From Salpingoeca rosetta (Eukaryota; Protista; Choanoflagellata): 64,000 bases of DNA. The notes below the pieces were generated by a model. The model was given only the letters and a program-made list of their open reading frames with translations, searched no databases and was not told where the DNA came from. A program made the translations under genes and the position numbers. Location: assembly GCA_033442325.1 (NCBI GenBank), contig JAWQFM010000004.1, positions 330,279 to 394,278 of the forward strand, given 5' to 3'. Shown here piece by piece: positions 2-47,595 of this stretch (positions are counted from its first letter, which is position 1; every line of letters begins with the position of its first letter).

Positions 2-577
2 GGTGTTTGCGCGTGGGTCAATGATGAGCACAGACGTTGCGCTTTCGGGAAACCCGTAGATGAGCCCGTTGTCGGCCAGCACCCCGCCCGTCCATTTGCT
101 GCCGCCTGCAGGCAAACCGGAGATGGATGTTGTGTCGGCGGTGTTGGTGGCAGGGTCGATGATGAGCACGGACGTGGACAAGTACGGGATGCCGTAGATG
201 AGCCCGTTGTCGGCCAGCACGCCGCCAATCCAGCCGCGGTCCATCATGCCCATGTTTGGAATGGAAGTTGTCGTTGGCGGGAAGCGACGGCACAGCGCCT
301 CGCGTTGCTCTTGCAACTGAATTGCCTGTCTTGACACCACACGCTGCTGTTCAAGCACAAGCGCGAACATCTTGCCCACGTCCACTCCGTTCACAAACAC
401 TGGTTCAGTCAGCGCATCGCTCGTGTTGATGTGCAGGGCGCCGCTCCCGTCCCGGCCAATGCCGACATCACCACTGAGCGCTGCAGTTTGGGGCAGTGGT
501 GCGACAAGAAGAAGCAGCAGCAGCAGCAGCAGTAGACGCAGCGGTGGGAGGAAGAGGAGGAGGGCGAGGGTTGACAT
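2..577 (-). CDS. Secreted KWxGGVL-repeat beta-propeller protein, 5' part (runs off the window edge); paralog of the genes at 36759 and 39641
   Basis: Manual translation from ATG 577: [65 protein letters not shown]...WIGGVLADNGLIYGIPYLSTSVLIIDPATNTADTT...KWTGGVLADNGLIYGFP. Signal peptide, N-terminal motif and repeat match the two complete paralogs. Absent from the ORF track because there is no stop within the window. Confidence 0.88.
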   Translation of the reverse strand, partial: MSTLALLLFLPPLRLLLLLLLLLLVAPLPQTAALSGDVGIGRDGSGALHINTSDALTEPVFVNGVDVGKMFALVLEQQRVVSRQAIQLQEQREALCRRFPPTTTSIPNMGMMDRGWIGGVLADNGLIYGIPYLSTSVLIIDPATNTADTTSISGLPAGGSKWTGGVLADNGLIYGFPESATSVLIIDPRANT

Positions 578-847
578 GATGATCTGTGGCTGGTGGGTTG
601 TGGTGTTGTGCGTTTTGTTGGAGAGTGCGTCTTGGCATTTCGCTTTGCTTTTTGCCAGCAACAAGAGTGCTTACCACAGAGAAGCAGTGCTTGTCAATTC
701 TGATTGTGCCGAGGCTCAAGAGACACTCAGCGTTCATTCATCCATCCACAAGAACACCGGCAGAAAGCAGAAGAGGAAGTCGAACACCCTGTCACTGACC
801 CTTCCGTCGACAACAACGCAAACAAGCAAACACTGCCAAGAACAACA

Positions 848-43071: not shown

Positions 43072-46000
43072 ATGACGACGGCTGTGGTGATGGTGCTGGT
43101 CGTGGCAGCCGTCACGGTGACCATGCACGCATGCTCAGCAACTGCTGCAACTCCAACCACACCACTCCGGTTCCAACAAGACAAGCAGGTGTGCTGTGCC
43201 AGGAAGTCGTTTTGGTTTTCTTATGTATTTTCGTTCGTTTGTCTGTAATGCTTGCTTTGTGCTGGTGCTGCACTGCTAACCTTGTCGTACACACACACAC
43301 ACACACACACACACACACACACACACACACACACACACACACACACACACACACACACACACACACACACACACACACACACCTCCCCTTCACCTCCCCC
43401 CCCCACAACATTTCCTTCAGCTCTGCTCGGAAGTACATGGCACACTAGAGAGCATGGTGCGCGTGCTGAGAACGCATGGCGTGGCATTTTCCCCCAATCC
43501 CCATGCACACAGCAACAGCAGCAGCAGCAAAGACGACTCCTCCCACAACGCAACGACACACGAAGTCCAAGGCGCTGCGGCAACTGCAAACACCCTGCAC
43601 TCTTCGCTCGTCGTCGACCTGTCACCGGTGCACCGCATGATGACTGCGTTTGGCTGCGGCAACCGAAATGACGAGCAGCCTCAGCGGAGCGATGACGAAT
43701 CAGCTCGTCATGACCCAAGTCACACCGCCTCACGTGTGCCCCCGTTTTCAGCGCCCACGCACGTGGACGACAGAGTGGACACCACCCGAAACGCAAAGGT
43801 CGCACAGGCCACTCAGAAGCAACAACAACAGCAGCAGCAGCAGCGACAACAGCAGCAGCAGCGACATCAAAGGCGCGTGCGACGAAGTGATGATGGAGCT
43901 GTCATGCAGGCTGGAATATGCACGCTGGCACAAGTACTTGATGGGCTGTGCCTGGGTCCCACAAGAAATAGCAGCCTTGTCATCTCATTGAGGGGAGACG
44001 AGAAGGTTGGGGACATGACAGAGGCTTTGCCGCTCCTCGCCATCTCCACTTCCGTTTTGAACCTGACGGTGAATGGGCGTGTGGAGGAAGAGCCTCTGCA
44101 ATGGCTCGTGGATAACGGCAACTGGACGCTGTGCACCGACGTGACCTTGGAGGGCTTACAGCTGCCCACGTTTCAGCTGAGCATGCTCAACCCCATGATG
44201 CACGCCCACAGAATTACCATCCGCAACAGCGAGCAGCTGCGTGAGGTCGACACGCGTGGCTTTCAGCAGCCAGAGAGCCTTTCCATTTTCCATGTGACAA
44301 ACTGCTCACTGCCGACCGTTCCTGCTGTGTCAGACATGACATCGCTGACTGTCCTTGGCTTGCATGCCAATCGCATTCGCCGCATTCTCAAGGATGATCT
44401 CAAGGACCTGACATCGTTGCAGCAGCTCTTCCTGAACCAGAACCTCATTACCCAGATTGAGCCAGGGGCGTTTGATCACCTCGCCGCACTCGAGTGGCTG
44501 GTGCTCTTCTCCAACGACTTGAGTGCTCTCTCCGCTGGCCTGTTTCAGAGCCTTACGCAGCTGTCGCTTTTGCAGCTGCAGCGGAACCCAATCACACACC
44601 TTGATCCGGACGTTTTTCATGCACTGACGATGCTGGATCAGCTGACTCTGGAAGACATGCGCCTTACAGGCCTTGCCCCGACTCTTTTCAGCCACAACAC
44701 CCGACTCACCAGCCTTGGGCTGGCCATCAATTTCCTGACGTCCCTTCCCGAGACGATGTTCTCCGGGCTATCGTCCCTGCAGGTTTTGCAGATGTTCCAA
44801 AACCGGCTGACATCGCTGCCACCAGCCGTGTTCCGGGACCTGACATCACTGACTTTCCTTGATTTGCGGGACAACGACATCTCCTTGCTGCCAGAGGTCA
44901 TTTTGGAGAAGTGCGAGCGTCTCCAAGTGCTCTTCTGCAACGGCAACCACCTTGTCACACTGCCGCCGAGACTCCTCGCAAGCACCTCTGCTCTTCGCCA
45001 GGTTTCCTTTTCCAACAACGCCCTTCGTTCGATAGACGGCGTTCTTGCTGCTTCTTCGCTGTCGTCACTGCTGGCCCTTGATGTGGACAACAATCACTTG
45101 ACACACGTGCGGCTCTCGAGACAGCTGCCAGCCCTCCAGCGACTCTCTCTCCGTGGCAACCCCATACAGGCGTTGCCAGACGTCTCGCAGACGCCTGCCC
45201 TGGACACTCTCCTGTTACAACGCCACCACATAGAGCGTCTTGACTTGGCGCCCCTGTGTCACCTGTCTCGTCTCCAGATCCTTGAGCTGGACGCCTCCGC
45301 GCACATCCAGTCCACTGCAGTGTTGGAAGCTTCAAGCATCACCGCTGTCCCACCTCTGATCACTCTGGGCCTGGATAATGTGGACATCACAGCATTGCTT
45401 CCATCGCTGCGGAGCCTGCCACCTCTGCAATTAGTTGTACTGCGCGTGGGGTGGGCCGGTGCCAACGCCAGAACACTGCCACTCACTGGCGTGTGCCAGC
45501 TGCTTGCGCCCAACGTGCGAGAGCTGCGCATCACCAACACAGAATACCAGACTATGAACGTGTGCCCGGGCAGGGCATTTGAGAACCTCCTTCTCACGGA
45601 CAACAAGCAACTGCAGTCTGTCACCGTCCACAGTGTCCTGAGAGAGCTCAACGTCTCCAGATGCACCCAGCTCACCTCGATTGACGCCCCTCCCATCGAC
45701 ATTTTGGATATCAGCCATACCAAGTTTCTACCGACTGGTACGCTGTGCACGCGCTGGGGTCGGCAAGCCCTCTTCGCGCGCAATTTGGCCGGGGTGGATG
45801 TTCAAGCCGCTGCAGTCACAGCACGTGCTTGCCTTCTTCGAGTGGACCTGCTGGACTTTTCCAACAACGCGTGGCTGAACAGGCCTGTGGAAGTTAACCG
45901 TATTCTTGGGCGCGCTACGGCCCTTTCCCAGAAGGCCTTGTTCTCTATCGATTTCGTTGTCATCTCGTCGCGTACGACACTGCCAACCCTGCAGCTCCAA

Positions 46001-47595
46001 GGCACGCCAATTGAGTGCCCGATCCAGGTTTCAAAACAAGACTTTCGCCTCGTACGCGACCTCAACGCGATCACGTCTGAGGTTGTGTTTTCCTTCCACT
46101 GCACATGTGCTCGTGGGTTCAAGATGACCTCCAGTGGGCAGTGCGTGGTGGACAAGCCGGACATTGCTGCCGTGGCTGCTGGCTCTGTGATTGGCGGCCT
46201 TGCGCTTGGCTTGCTCATGGCCTGGCTGTCACGCCGCTACCGTGGCATGACGAAACGCATCGGCCTACAGGAACAGCTGCTGGTGGAGAGGGATGAGGAG
46301 GTGATGGCGCTGAAGAAGGCGTGGGAGATTGAGTACGATGAGCTGAGGATGATCAAGCGGGTTGCTGCGGGTGCCTTTGGCGTGGTGTTCAAGGCAGAGT
46401 GGGACACGGTGACAGTGGCAGTCAAAGTGCTGCAGCAAGCCGTCATGGCATTTGACGAGAGCACGGTGTTGGAGTTTGAGAAGGAGGTGGAGTTTCTGCA
46501 GCGAACACGGCACCCCAACGTGGTGCGGTTCTTTGGTGCGGGCACAGATCCCAACGGCAGCCCGTTCCTGGTGCTGGAGTTTGTGGCGCTGGGGTCACTC
46601 AAGGACCTGCTGGGAAAGGACATGGAGAAGGTGTTGATGGAAGTGAGGAACACTAAGGTCGAGGAAAGCAGCAGTGGTGGTGTGGGTGATGATGTGAACA
46701 GTGTGTGGGGTCTGAAGCTGCGACTGCTGCGTGACGTTGCGAGTGGCATGGCCTTTATCCACAGCCTCGACCAGATGCACAGGTGTGCTTGTGTGTGTGT
46801 GTGTGTTTGTGAACGTGTGTGTATGTGAGTGTGTGCGTGTGCTTGAAGCTGCGTATCTATGCTTGCATGCGGGTACGCACTCTTGCTCACCGCACCATCC
46901 TACCCACCACTGCTTCCACGCTCATCCACATCCACAGAGATCTGAAGAGCGGCAACGTGCTGGTGTCGTCGTCCCTTCGCGCGAAGATTACGGATTTTGG
47001 GTCCATTCGCCAGTGCTTTTCTCGTGGTGGCAGAGCCCACGGCAGAAGCCACACTCGCCTGTCATCCAACCATGATGACCCACAATACAGCCAGCAGGCT
47101 GGACTGCAGACGATGACGAGCATGACACTGACGGCTGGCGTGGGCACACCGTTGTACATGGCACCAGAGGCGCTGACGGGGAGCAAGTACAGCTTTGAGG
47201 CGGATGTGTTCAGCTTTGGCGTGCTGATGTGGGAGGTGGCGACCCAGCGTGTGCCGGACTTGATTGAGCAGGAGAAAGGGAGTGACTTCCGTGGCCCAAT
47301 CCTCGCCACCATCAGCAATCTTTTGGAGGATGGGAAGCGATTGCGATTTGATGACAGCGAACAAGATGGTGAGAAGCTGCTGGTACGTGTGTGTGTGTGT
47401 GTGTGTGTGTGTGTGTGTGTGTGTGTGTGTGCTTGGATTGCTTGCACGTCCTCTCTTCTCACTCACACACACATGCACACACCTCCATCCGCAGCCATCC
47501 CTGAGTGGTTCCAGTCGCTGACATACAAGTGCATGGCGCAGAACCCGCGTGAGCGGCCGTCGTTTGGAGAGCTCAAGGACCACCATCTTGTTTGA
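43072..47595 (+). CDS. LRR receptor-like Ser/Thr (TKL) kinase; exons 43072-43188, 43421-46782, 46938-47368, 47495-47595
   Basis: The signal-peptide exon MTTAVVMVLVVAAVTV splices in phase. About 14 LxxLxLxxNxL repeats, a Cys-rich CTCARGF..QC segment, TM IAAVAAGSVIGGLALGLLMAWL, then kinase AAGAFGVV, VAVK, HR|DLKSGN, DFG, GTPLYMAPE. All introns are GT-AG. Confidence 0.92.

Follow-up and report, generated by a model that had tools for sequence, protein, structure and literature searches.

Do the receptor-like genes crowded together in the choanoflagellate Salpingoeca rosetta form an island devoted to innate immunity and non-self recognition, or does their clustering record how such genes are born and copied? 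We analysed a stretch of 64,000 nucleotides (hereafter the window; Table 1), which corresponds to scaffold GL832995. Between 1 and 47.6 kb, 8 or 9 of about 15 gene models were found to be receptor-like, so the high density of receptor-like genes reported in a preliminary description is real. These genes belong to lineage-expanded families. The housekeeping edge, also described previously, is present from about 48.7 kb, where the UQ_con (E2) match marks its start, with Ribosomal_S9 and DUF4209 (ERMARD-type) beyond; a PAP_assoc gene is also part of this bounding block. The cluster interior additionally holds unrelated genes, namely a P-ATPase-like gene and several genes without a known family. 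Our main new result is that the cluster, as judged by sequence comparison, is a patchwork of blocks copied to or from other genome loci.

Table 1. Genes, assembly gaps and copied blocks of the window, numbered from its first nucleotide.
Feature	Positions	Strand	Description
Propeller paralog 3	1..577	-	annotated 420-aa gene extends past window start
Copied block	728..5279		matches L009, 76-80%
TIR-TPR gene	848..3046	+	protein P0241, 623 aa; predicted TIR-fold domain (HET-like motifs) fused directly to TPR repeats
Candidate LRR-like gene	3578..6121	-	794 aa, polyQ, leucine-rich C-terminus, possibly LRR/FNIP-like
Copied block	8156..10812		matches L002, inverted, 90.9%
STAND1, front part	8329..12369	+	N-terminal region, NACHT, WHD_NWD1, first WD40 repeats to gap
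Assembly gap within STAND1	12370..12981	.	612 N
WD40 part 3' of gap	12984..14492	+	annotated as separate 416-aa gene
NACHT-WD40 no. 2	21082..26067	+	single-exon ORF, 1661 aa, identical to annotated protein
Assembly gap	28620..28719	.	removes 5' part of second kinase gene
Kinase C-lobe piece of LRR-TKL paralog	28741..29588	+	81-88% protein identity to paralogs
Copied block	30153..36097		matches L003, 83.7%; holds gene X
Gene X, degenerate heavy-metal P-type-ATPase-like	30721..35531	-	annotated 859 aa
Propeller paralog 1	36759..37994	+	74% identical to ectodomain of TIR-TM-propeller protein P0002
Propeller paralog 2	39641..40993	+	62% identical to paralog 1
Block upstream of LRR kinase	41223..43100	.	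small minus-strand gene ~42098-42796
Copied block	41223..47599		matches L002, 79.9% over 6.6 kb
Complete LRR-TM-TKL receptor kinase	43123..47595	+	intron ~46784-46917
Ordinary-gene block	48741..60595	.	UQ_con (E2), PAP_assoc, mitochondrial-type Ribosomal_S9, DUF4209 (ERMARD-type)

The receptor-like content had been described as two NACHT-WD40 STAND genes, a HET/TIR-like-TPR gene, three propeller paralogs, a degenerate LRR gene and two LRR-receptor kinase paralogs, interspersed with pseudogenes. Both NACHT-WD40 genes were recovered, STAND1 interrupted by an assembly gap and no. 2 intact, as were all three propeller paralogs and the TIR-TPR gene, the last recognized by its TPR_12 match (E 7e-74) together with a TIR-fold model match. 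The degenerate LRR gene stands as a candidate, with a weak language-model lead (0.87) to LRR/FNIP families and no match of its protein in a Pfam search. One kinase gene is complete and the second is represented by a kinase C-lobe only; this piece and the degenerate P-type-ATPase-like gene are the pseudogene-like loci, none being seen beyond these two.

The N-terminal domain of P0241, whose gene carries a (CA)n run in an intron at about 1291-1621, yielded no TIR, TIR_2 or HET match in a Pfam profile search with E up to 10, and a PDB profile search reached a TIR protein at E 1.3 only. Assignment to the HET domain (PF06985) was rejected for lack of a Pfam profile match, and HET likeness is limited to motif blocks recognized by eye (FVSHAW, FWFDLFxNNQ and RAWCLWEI). 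Using the predicted model of this domain (pLDDT 89.9), the top 10 Foldseek matches were all plant TIRs (E 0.02-0.1), and VIA aligned it to TIR domains of IL-18Rb, TIR-1/SARM1, MyD88, RPP1 and ThsB with Z 6-7 across about 120-130 residues, a likeness of middling strength; nucleoside 2-deoxyribosyltransferases tie with TIR domains as fold matches. Residues 25-290 are predicted, at this middling strength, to adopt a flavodoxin-like TIR fold. P0241 also carries an invariant Glu, E183, within WCLWEI. P0241 shares its predicted TIR fold and repeat-sensor fusion with the TIR-domain NADase immune proteins (plant TNL TIRs, SARM1 and bacterial ThsB), but differs from them in having neither a Pfam TIR or HET match nor an NTPase, and in possessing an extra helical region.

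STAND1 possesses NACHT and WHD_NWD1 domains within 8329-11985, with the P-loop GPSGSGKT at 10066 and Walker B at 10401-10571 in a different frame, separated by a small intron. Since the flanks of its gap both encode WD40 repeats on the same strand, and the L002 paralog is a single 1369-aa gene, STAND1 is likely one gene with the downstream WD40 part probably its C-terminus. NACHT-WD40 no. 2 has an NPHP3_N/NACHT region at aa 468-642 (NPHP3_N E 1.5e-22; NACHT E 1.7e-7) with the P-loop GTGGLGKS at aa 472, followed by HTH_TANC1 and at least 13 WD40 repeats, and the P-loops of both genes are intact. The 126-nt units of its WD40 array match at 95% at 25529-25923 and at 69-77% elsewhere, the high similarity being confined to about three units. 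A Pfam search with aa 1-467 gave no match; this N-terminus is helical and includes, at aa 153-285, a four-helix bundle that matches NRG1.1 CC-R (Z 9.7) and MLKL (Z 9.3) as well as generic bundles, at Z of about 9-10 where helical-bundle matches below about 13 may be generic. Classification as an animal NLR (NACHT-LRR with CARD, PYD or Death) was rejected, as NACHT is present but WD40 replaces LRR and no death-fold Pfam match was found. These features are in line with Yuen et al. 2014. With fungal NWD/HET-E STAND proteins, whose WD40 repeats are highly similar and which act in allorecognition and cell death, these genes share NACHT and WD40 domains, homogenised 126-nt WD40 units, the existence of paralogs and, putatively, effector modules at the N-terminus. 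Unlike their fungal counterparts, the NACHT proteins of the window lack HET, the HET-like, putatively TIR-fold domain being found on a separate TPR protein without an NTPase, and the homogenised stretch covers only the three or so units noted above. To our knowledge, incompatibility is not known in choanoflagellates.

The three stalked propeller paralogs are 42-62% identical to one another; the N-terminus of paralog 3 is hydrophobic and the protein also has a coiled-coil stalk and KW-GGVLA-NGLIY blades, and the closest relative of paralog 1 among the matches listed is P0002 (TIR_2 E 4e-6). The complete LRR kinase comprises five LRR_8 stretches, a single TM helix (aa 903-925) with basic residues on its C-terminal side, and intact HRDLKSGN, DFG and APE motifs. 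With LRRs predicted to be extracellular and an intact kinase inside the cell, its architecture is like that of plant LRR-RLKs; the TKL label follows the NCBI naming of its paralogs and does not imply placement in the RLK/Pelle-IRAK group. Like the choanoflagellate Kinase TLRs (LRR-TM-kinase-TIR; Richter et al. 2018, PMC6040629), it combines a choanoflagellate-specific LRR ectodomain with a TM helix and an intracellular kinase, but the TIR Pfam domain is absent both from the window gene, which ends with the kinase, and from paralogs P0121-P0127. In the C-lobe piece another residue takes the place of the catalytic-loop Asp (GCK for DLK). The piece has dN/dS values of 0.11-0.16; like the constant parts described below, it is under purifying selection. 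Homology to the paralogs starts at the first base 3' of the adjoining gap, and no LRR-kinase-like sequence was found 5' of it; either this gap lacks at least about 3.6 kb of the gene's sequence, or the join is wrong.

Genomic comparison revealed that four blocks of the window recur with 76-91% identity at three further loci (L002, L003 and L009). Along the window/L002 pair, identity is distributed as a mosaic. Compared with P0121, the LRR kinase is 95-98% identical before the LRR block (dS 0-0.07), 48-72% within it (dS about 0.5 to saturated) and 95-100% after it (dS 0.04-0.17); the nucleotide profile against L002 likewise runs from 96-99% through 52-73% to 94-98%, and the block upstream of the kinase is 96-99% identical from about 41.75 kb on. 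STAND1 is 88-99% identical to its L002 copy until 10.85 kb and about random beyond. The same two loci are thus mosaics of constant and variable parts for two receptor classes: the constant parts of the kinase and the STAND gene are 94-99% identical, and the LRR and WD40 parts, on these figures, are anciently diverged or unrelated. Where dS can be measured within the LRR block, dN/dS lies at about 0.1-0.8 and mostly near 0.3; with dS largely saturated, these values give no basis for positive selection. The mosaic identity along copied blocks points to gene conversion. Variant sites are common to DNA runs from four studies, which show 3-5 times depth over the kinase lobe; these sites point to near-identical extra copies, not alleles. 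Taken together, the four copied blocks, mosaic identity, homogenised repeats, shared variant sites and truncated kinase copy lend good support to the birth-and-death turnover that had been proposed, and birth and death in a receptor cluster is supported, from sequence, as the evolutionary mode of these genes.

We consider it reasonably probable that segmental duplications, laid together as a patchwork, gave rise to this real and densely packed cluster of lineage-expanded, receptor-like genes. The sets copied between the window and at least three other loci comprise propeller, TIR-TPR and LRR-like genes; the LRR-TM-TKL kinase together with the gene upstream of it; the first half of a NACHT STAND gene; and the P-ATPase-like gene with a propeller. 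The signalling parts are nearly identical between copies (in the LRR kinase, the N-terminus, TM and kinase domain; in the STAND gene, the N-terminus and NACHT), probably through recent gene conversion, and the putative ligand-binding LRR and WD40 repeats are old divergent cassettes or internally homogenised. The predicted products, an LRR kinase at the surface, propellers secreted or anchored, and TIR-TPR and NACHT-WD40 as cytosolic binding-and-signalling proteins, might constitute a diversifying recognition repertoire, possibly directed against bacteria, viruses or other cells. Clustering would mirror gene birth and copying, rather than a proven co-regulated unit.

A functional island, in which intracellular, surface and secreted sensors of pathogens or non-self form a supergene of co-acting or co-regulated genes, is the view of the preliminary description and seems unlikely to us. 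Beyond the density of receptor-like genes, it is favored by the putative TIR-fold domain, the bundle resembling MLKL and plant CC-R, the TIR-TM-propeller relative, and the finding, documented in other choanoflagellates (bioRxiv 10.1101/2025.09.04.674280), that the immune genes cGLR and STING lie next to each other. Family combinations also recur: LRR-TKL lies head-to-head with a propeller at L007 and tail-to-tail with a STAND paralog at L002, TIR-TPR lies head-to-head with a propeller at L008, and L009 unites a propeller, a TIR-TPR gene and an adjoining paralog of the LRR-like gene. Since duplication links the window with L002 and L009, not all of these recurrences are independent. Moreover, shared genes differ in order and orientation among copies, the distance between LRR-TKL and STAND being 650 bp in L002 and 29 kb in the window, and unrelated genes lie inside the cluster. 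All families are large and dispersed (TIR-TPR, at least 38 genes on more than 25 scaffolds; propellers, at least 15 genes listed on at least 12 scaffolds; LRR-TKL, seven genes besides that of the window), and two of four other LRR-TKL loci (L004 and L005) sit among ordinary or housekeeping genes.

A region prone to duplication, in which expanding families accumulate, accounts for these observations no less well than a functional island. We doubt that chance or compartment co-location, with families piling up in duplication-prone, poorly assembled regions and a sensor theme chosen post hoc, is the explanation. The dispersal of the families speaks for it, as do the position of the region within 62 kb of the original scaffold end, its many gaps and a weak DDE transposase-like ORF carried by L009. 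If about 300 genes are counted, a liberal choice, a rough Poisson calculation predicts about 0.04 windows of this kind in the genome, only a borderline value. Against chance, narrower family sizes under uniform placement make five independent family groups in 47 kb very unlikely, at a rough estimate of <1e-3 genome-wide. Particular neighbour sets also recur beyond general co-location, and the purifying selection on the kinase piece and constant parts likewise weighs against chance. Wrong joins at N gaps, uniting contigs of different paralogous loci, could in part have inflated the cluster, and the two gaps in its interior, the flanks of the second, which do not suit a single gene, the 477-nt duplicate (99.8% identical) flanking another at 62353, which indicates that gaps here can be artefacts, and the half of compared DNA contigs that are only 95-99% alike are consistent with this. 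We judge such an artefact to be quite improbable, as each gap-free contig alone already carries several families (1-12369: propeller, TIR-TPR, LRR-like gene and STAND1; 12982-28619: WD40 part and NACHT-WD40 no. 2; 28720-49076: kinase piece, two propellers, LRR-TKL and E2 gene), and the WD40 flanks of the first gap suit one gene, as in the L002 paralog.

A cluster of duplicated receptor-like genes, which we favor, resembles the rapidly evolving groups of immune receptors in plants and fungi. With plant NLR and LRR-RLK/RLP disease-resistance clusters, which evolve by birth and death, it shares a mix of intracellular and surface receptors, segmental and tandem duplication, truncated copies, and putative gene conversion of constant parts alongside divergent LRR parts; it differs in encoding NACHT-WD40 rather than NB-ARC-LRR proteins and a kinase that is TKL by NCBI naming, and in residing in a unicellular relative of animals. 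From domain analogy, which draws on the TIR-like fold (Z 6-7), the four-helix bundle with its generic matches and the LRR-kinase architecture, we infer that the cluster may have an innate-immunity or non-self recognition role. Tentatively, and with rather low confidence, the block-copied sets might be working recognition modules in which secreted or anchored stalked propellers serve as variable binders and pair with signalling partners encoded by their neighbours (TIR-TPR, LRR-TM-TKL and NACHT-WD40), inter-locus conversion keeping the signalling parts uniform and old LRR, WD40 and propeller cassettes being preserved. If true, this would represent an innate repertoire in the sister group of animals, built on principles common to plant and fungal receptor clusters.

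Comparison of the cluster with other S. rosetta loci, fetched around paralogs of its genes, revealed a patchwork of blocks that have copies elsewhere. Positions 41223-47599 are collinear with a locus on scaffold GL832960 (L002; 79.9% identity over 6.6 kb), to which 8156-10812 also aligns in inverted orientation (90.9%). A further block, 30153-36097, matches a different locus on GL832960 (L003; 83.7%, with 76.8% for the adjacent propeller beyond the block), and 728-5279 matches a locus on GL832983 (L009; 76-80%). Identity to L002 varies sharply along the LRR kinase region, at 96-99% for 41.75-43.8 kb, 52-73% for the LRR block (43.8-46.0 kb) and 94-98% for the TM segment and kinase N-lobe (46.0-46.8 kb). 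At the codon level, dS is 0-0.17 in the constant parts of this gene and runs from ~0.5 to saturation in the LRR block, where dN/dS is mostly near 0.3 in the measurable stretches. The near-identical constant parts are most simply read as products of partial re-copying or of recent gene conversion, by which signalling parts would have been renewed around old, distinct sensor cassettes. Together, the copied blocks and mosaic identity support the rapid turnover that the preliminary description had proposed for a candidate innate-immunity sensor island.

Public gene models cover 1-35.5 kb; between 36 and 47.6 kb, two propellers and the LRR kinase were placed by paralog guidance. The 1661-aa NACHT-WD40 ORF exactly matches an S. 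rosetta protein from scaffold GL832995.1 of assembly GCA_000188695.1. The window is oriented in reverse of this scaffold, the first base of which falls at 62353, where it is linked to other sequence through a 100-N gap. Pfam searches of at least 20 additional ORFs (14.5-20.6, 26.4-28.6 and 30.7-35.5 kb) gave zero matches, PADLOC returned P-loop or low-complexity matches only, and telomere repeats are absent from the window. The right edge, described earlier as a housekeeping block, is borne out as a run of ordinary genes by its four domain matches.

Gene models and right-edge domain matches, in window positions
Feature	Position	Strand	Source
Propeller, 420 aa	end at 577	-	public model
TPR protein P0241	848-3046	+	public model
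794-aa protein without Pfam domains	3578-6121	-	public model
NACHT + WHD_NWD1 protein, 1019 aa	8329-11985		public model
WD40 protein, 416 aa	13047-14492		public model
Two models without assigned identity	17420-18859 and 18993-20626		public models
NACHT-WD40 protein, 1661 aa	21082-26067		public model
Model without assigned identity	26417-28605		public model
Kinase piece, 179 aa	28733-29586		public model
103-aa gene	between kinase piece and 859-aa gene in list order		public model
859-aa gene (gene X)	30721-35531	-	public model
UQ_con	48741		right-edge gene
PAP_assoc	53.7-54.4 kb	-	right-edge gene
Ribosomal_S9	57.7 kb		right-edge gene
DUF4209	59.4-60.6 kb		right-edge gene

The window contains seven N runs. 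A 477-nt direct duplicate, 99.8% identical, lies on both sides of the gap at 62353-62452 (61876-62352 and 62453-62928); because it flanks the gap, the scaffold ends overlap, and gap and duplicate are probably an assembly artefact. Within the housekeeping block, a 319-nt stretch at 51092-51410 is 97% identical to 56413-56730, the second copy stopping exactly at the gap at 56731-56830; a contig end may have been collapsed or misplaced here. Throughout the cluster, introns and intergenic sequence contain long (CA)n/(TG)n runs (1396-1602, 6124-6261, 7056-7236, 8824-9018, 43289-43382 and others), which are read as long Thr-His or Cys-Val ORFs that inflate ORF lists. Such runs could promote recombination.

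The protein P0241, previously described as HET/TIR-like-TPR, has strong TPR_12/TPR_10 matches, and its first 290 residues gave zero Pfam matches at E-values up to 10. These residues are conserved across 64 database relatives, of which approximately 37 are S. rosetta paralogs spread over more than 25 scaffolds, with the invariant residues falling in the blocks FVSHAW, FWFDLFxNNQ and RAWCLWEI. An AlphaFold model of the domain, generated from the family alignment, was confident (pLDDT 89.9). Its best ten Foldseek matches in the PDB were plant TIR domains throughout, though with E-values of only 0.02-0.1, and an exhaustive aligner gave Z-scores of 6-7 over ~120-130 residues against many TIR domains, among them IL-18Rb, TIR-1/SARM1, MyD88, RPP1, RPS4, SpbK and ThsB; nucleoside 2-deoxyribosyltransferases tie with TIR domains in Z. 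The model thus argues with moderate strength for a TIR fold, and placement of the domain in Pfam TIR or HET at the sequence level is not supported. The neighbouring 794-aa protein, termed a degenerate LRR gene in the preliminary description, possesses a polyQ tract and is rich in leucine at its C-terminus; an LRR assignment is supported solely by its language-model score to LRR/FNIP clusters, 0.87, which at below 0.9 the tool treats as a lead only.

Both NACHT-WD40 STAND genes were identified. The 1661-aa gene combines NPHP3_N/NACHT with an intact P-loop, a TANC1-type winged helix and at least 13 WD40 repeats; none of the seven comparison loci carries a paralog of it. For its N-terminal 470 residues, 19 relatives exist among 1.8 billion representatives, always with NACHT downstream. 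A model of this region (pLDDT 71.5) contains a four-helix bundle at 153-285 that matches MLKL as well as the CC-R and CC domains of plants at Z 9-10; since generic helical bundles score in the same range, an MLKL/HeLo-like effector is only a possible assignment. The other gene, STAND1, is probably interrupted by the gap at 12370-12981. Its P-loop (10066) and Walker B (10401-10571) lie in different frames, followed by WHD_NWD1 at 10900-11235, and the paralog at L002 has an identical pattern of frame changes, indicating that the shifts are small introns and that the in-frame TGA at 10474 falls outside the reading path. The pseudogene that the TGA had suggested was rejected on these grounds. ORFs on either side of the gap (11483-12367 and 12984-14489, both plus strand) have WD40/beta-propeller matches, and the L002 paralog, whose successive ORFs carry P-loop, NACHT and WD40, is annotated as a single 1369-aa gene, so STAND1 is likely also one NACHT-WHD-WD40 gene.

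STAND1 and its L002 paralog are 88-99% identical until 10.85 kb and unalignable beyond, from which it follows that their winged-helix and WD40 parts differ. In a comparison of L002:15273-19925 (-) with 10858-14492, the two agree at ~91% nucleotide identity over the N-terminus and NACHT; their winged-helix and WD40 halves are unrelated, with a WHD_NWD1 Pfam match in the window copy only.

The three propeller paralogs of the preliminary description are confirmed by a common hydrophobic N-terminus, a conserved GEVT-VEDDAGA-HINTSDP segment, a stalk and seven KW-GGVLA-NGLIY blades, for which Pfam returned DUF5074/DUF6923 only. S. rosetta has a large family of these propellers, with at least 15 paralogs on at least 12 scaffolds among the matches listed. 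Also among these matches, the closest relative of the first propeller (74% identity) is P0002, in which a TIR domain just short of threshold (TIR_2; E 4e-6; 27.7 bits, cut-off 28) precedes a TM helix and propeller. Exact-protein look-ups of two propeller ORFs found no record. Bacteria, too, encode many relatives of the propeller head (36759-37994 and relatives), with blades ~45-55% identical; some come from Spirochaetota MAGs and some bear the label streptogramin lyase. Genes may thus have passed between choanoflagellates and bacteria.

Of the two LRR-receptor kinases reported earlier, one is complete, with LRRs, one TM helix that basic residues follow, and HRD, DFG and APE in its kinase domain; an exact-protein look-up of another LRR-TKL paralog, P0124, found no record. 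The second comprises the kinase C-lobe alone. Its similarity to the complete gene begins immediately behind the gap at 28620-28719, with base 28720, and LRR-kinase similarity is absent upstream of that gap. A wrong assembly join at the gap is one alternative explanation, and a dead pseudogene was another, given that its catalytic loop (28866-28880) has Gly-Cys-Lys where all paralogs have Asp-Leu-Lys. Despite the replaced catalytic Asp, the exon has a dN/dS of 0.11-0.16 against four paralogs, which argues for constraint, and decay was set aside. We read the piece as part of a constrained gene with an unassembled front, possibly a pseudokinase.

Across 28720-34700, every bin is covered by DNA contigs of four independent studies, half of the contigs being only 95-99% alike. 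The same minority variants occur at ~40 sites in all four DNA runs, as does a form skipping 28905-29141, and depth is 3-5 times higher over the kinase lobe. The common variants and raised depth point to additional near-identical copies missing from the assembly. Gene X, in the same region, lies in a block with an even 85-93% identity, exons equalling introns. Its ORFs have zero Pfam matches. In the PDB, two of them weakly match copper/cadmium P-type ATPases (E 0.0014 and 0.056), collinear and in the right order on HMA4 (residues 281-355 and 600-754). Where P-type ATPases carry MLTGD and GDGIND, its phosphatase-type motifs appear by eye as the degenerate MLTRA and GDNINI. Gene X looks like a decaying, repurposed or strongly diverged P-type-ATPase-like passenger, copied along with propeller genes.

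Similar gene neighbourhoods recur elsewhere. At L002, the LRR-TKL gene P0121 lies tail-to-tail with the STAND1 paralog, 650 bp apart, and at L007 an LRR-TKL gene is head-to-head with the propeller P0023. At L008, a TIR-TPR gene is head-to-head with a propeller and followed by a second TIR-TPR gene; L007 lies ~40 kb from L008, indicating that GL832983 carries the same families over ~85-166 kb. At L009, the TIR-TPR paralog nearest to P0241 (87% identical in protein) is grouped with a propeller and with a paralog of the 794-aa gene, as in the first 1-6 kb of the window. A 446-aa gene adjoining this trio (L009:20948-21952, -) weakly resembles a DDE_3 transposase (E 0.0015). Counting against recurrence, the LRR-TKL genes at L004 and L005 sit amid ordinary neighbours (sulfatase, CCDC34, peptide deformylase, TatD, ankyrin, Kelch kinase). 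Assuming a 55-Mb genome with ~66 TIR-TPR genes (at least 38 counted), 18 propellers, 9 LRR-TKL genes and a few dozen NACHT genes, we roughly estimate ~0.1 such genes per 47.6-kb interval, and five independent groups in one interval would be expected in fewer than one per thousand genomes. The genome-wide expectation rises to ~0.04 with ~100 propellers and a liberal "sensor" set of ~300 genes, and would be higher still were the families concentrated in a small genome compartment. On these rough estimates, the receptor-like cluster is probably non-random.

S. rosetta NACHT domains with WD40, TPR or ANK repeats are on record, with bona fide NLRs concluded to be absent (Yuen et al. 2014). NACHT-LRR combinations without death-fold domains, and "Kinase TLRs" of LRR-TM-kinase-TIR order, have also been described (Richter et al. 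2018, PMC6040629); in contrast to the latter, the LRR kinase genes of the window are without TIR. Adjacency of cGLR and STING is documented in choanoflagellates (bioRxiv 10.1101/2025.09.04.674280), and our literature search for receptor-gene clusters, gene conversion or segmental duplication in S. rosetta yielded no paper on any of these. Taken together, the preliminary observation was largely right, and an immune island would be a reasonable reading of the cluster by analogy. The recurring gene sets offer concrete pairs for binding and knock-out tests in an organism that is genetically manipulable. If S. rosetta keeps diversifying receptors in duplication-driven clusters, with constant signalling parts and variable repeats, a counterpart of the genomic organisation seen in plant and fungal immune receptors would exist near the animal root, built from different parts: TIR folds on TPRs without an NTPase, NACHT-WD40 proteins, LRR-TKL kinases and stalked propellers.
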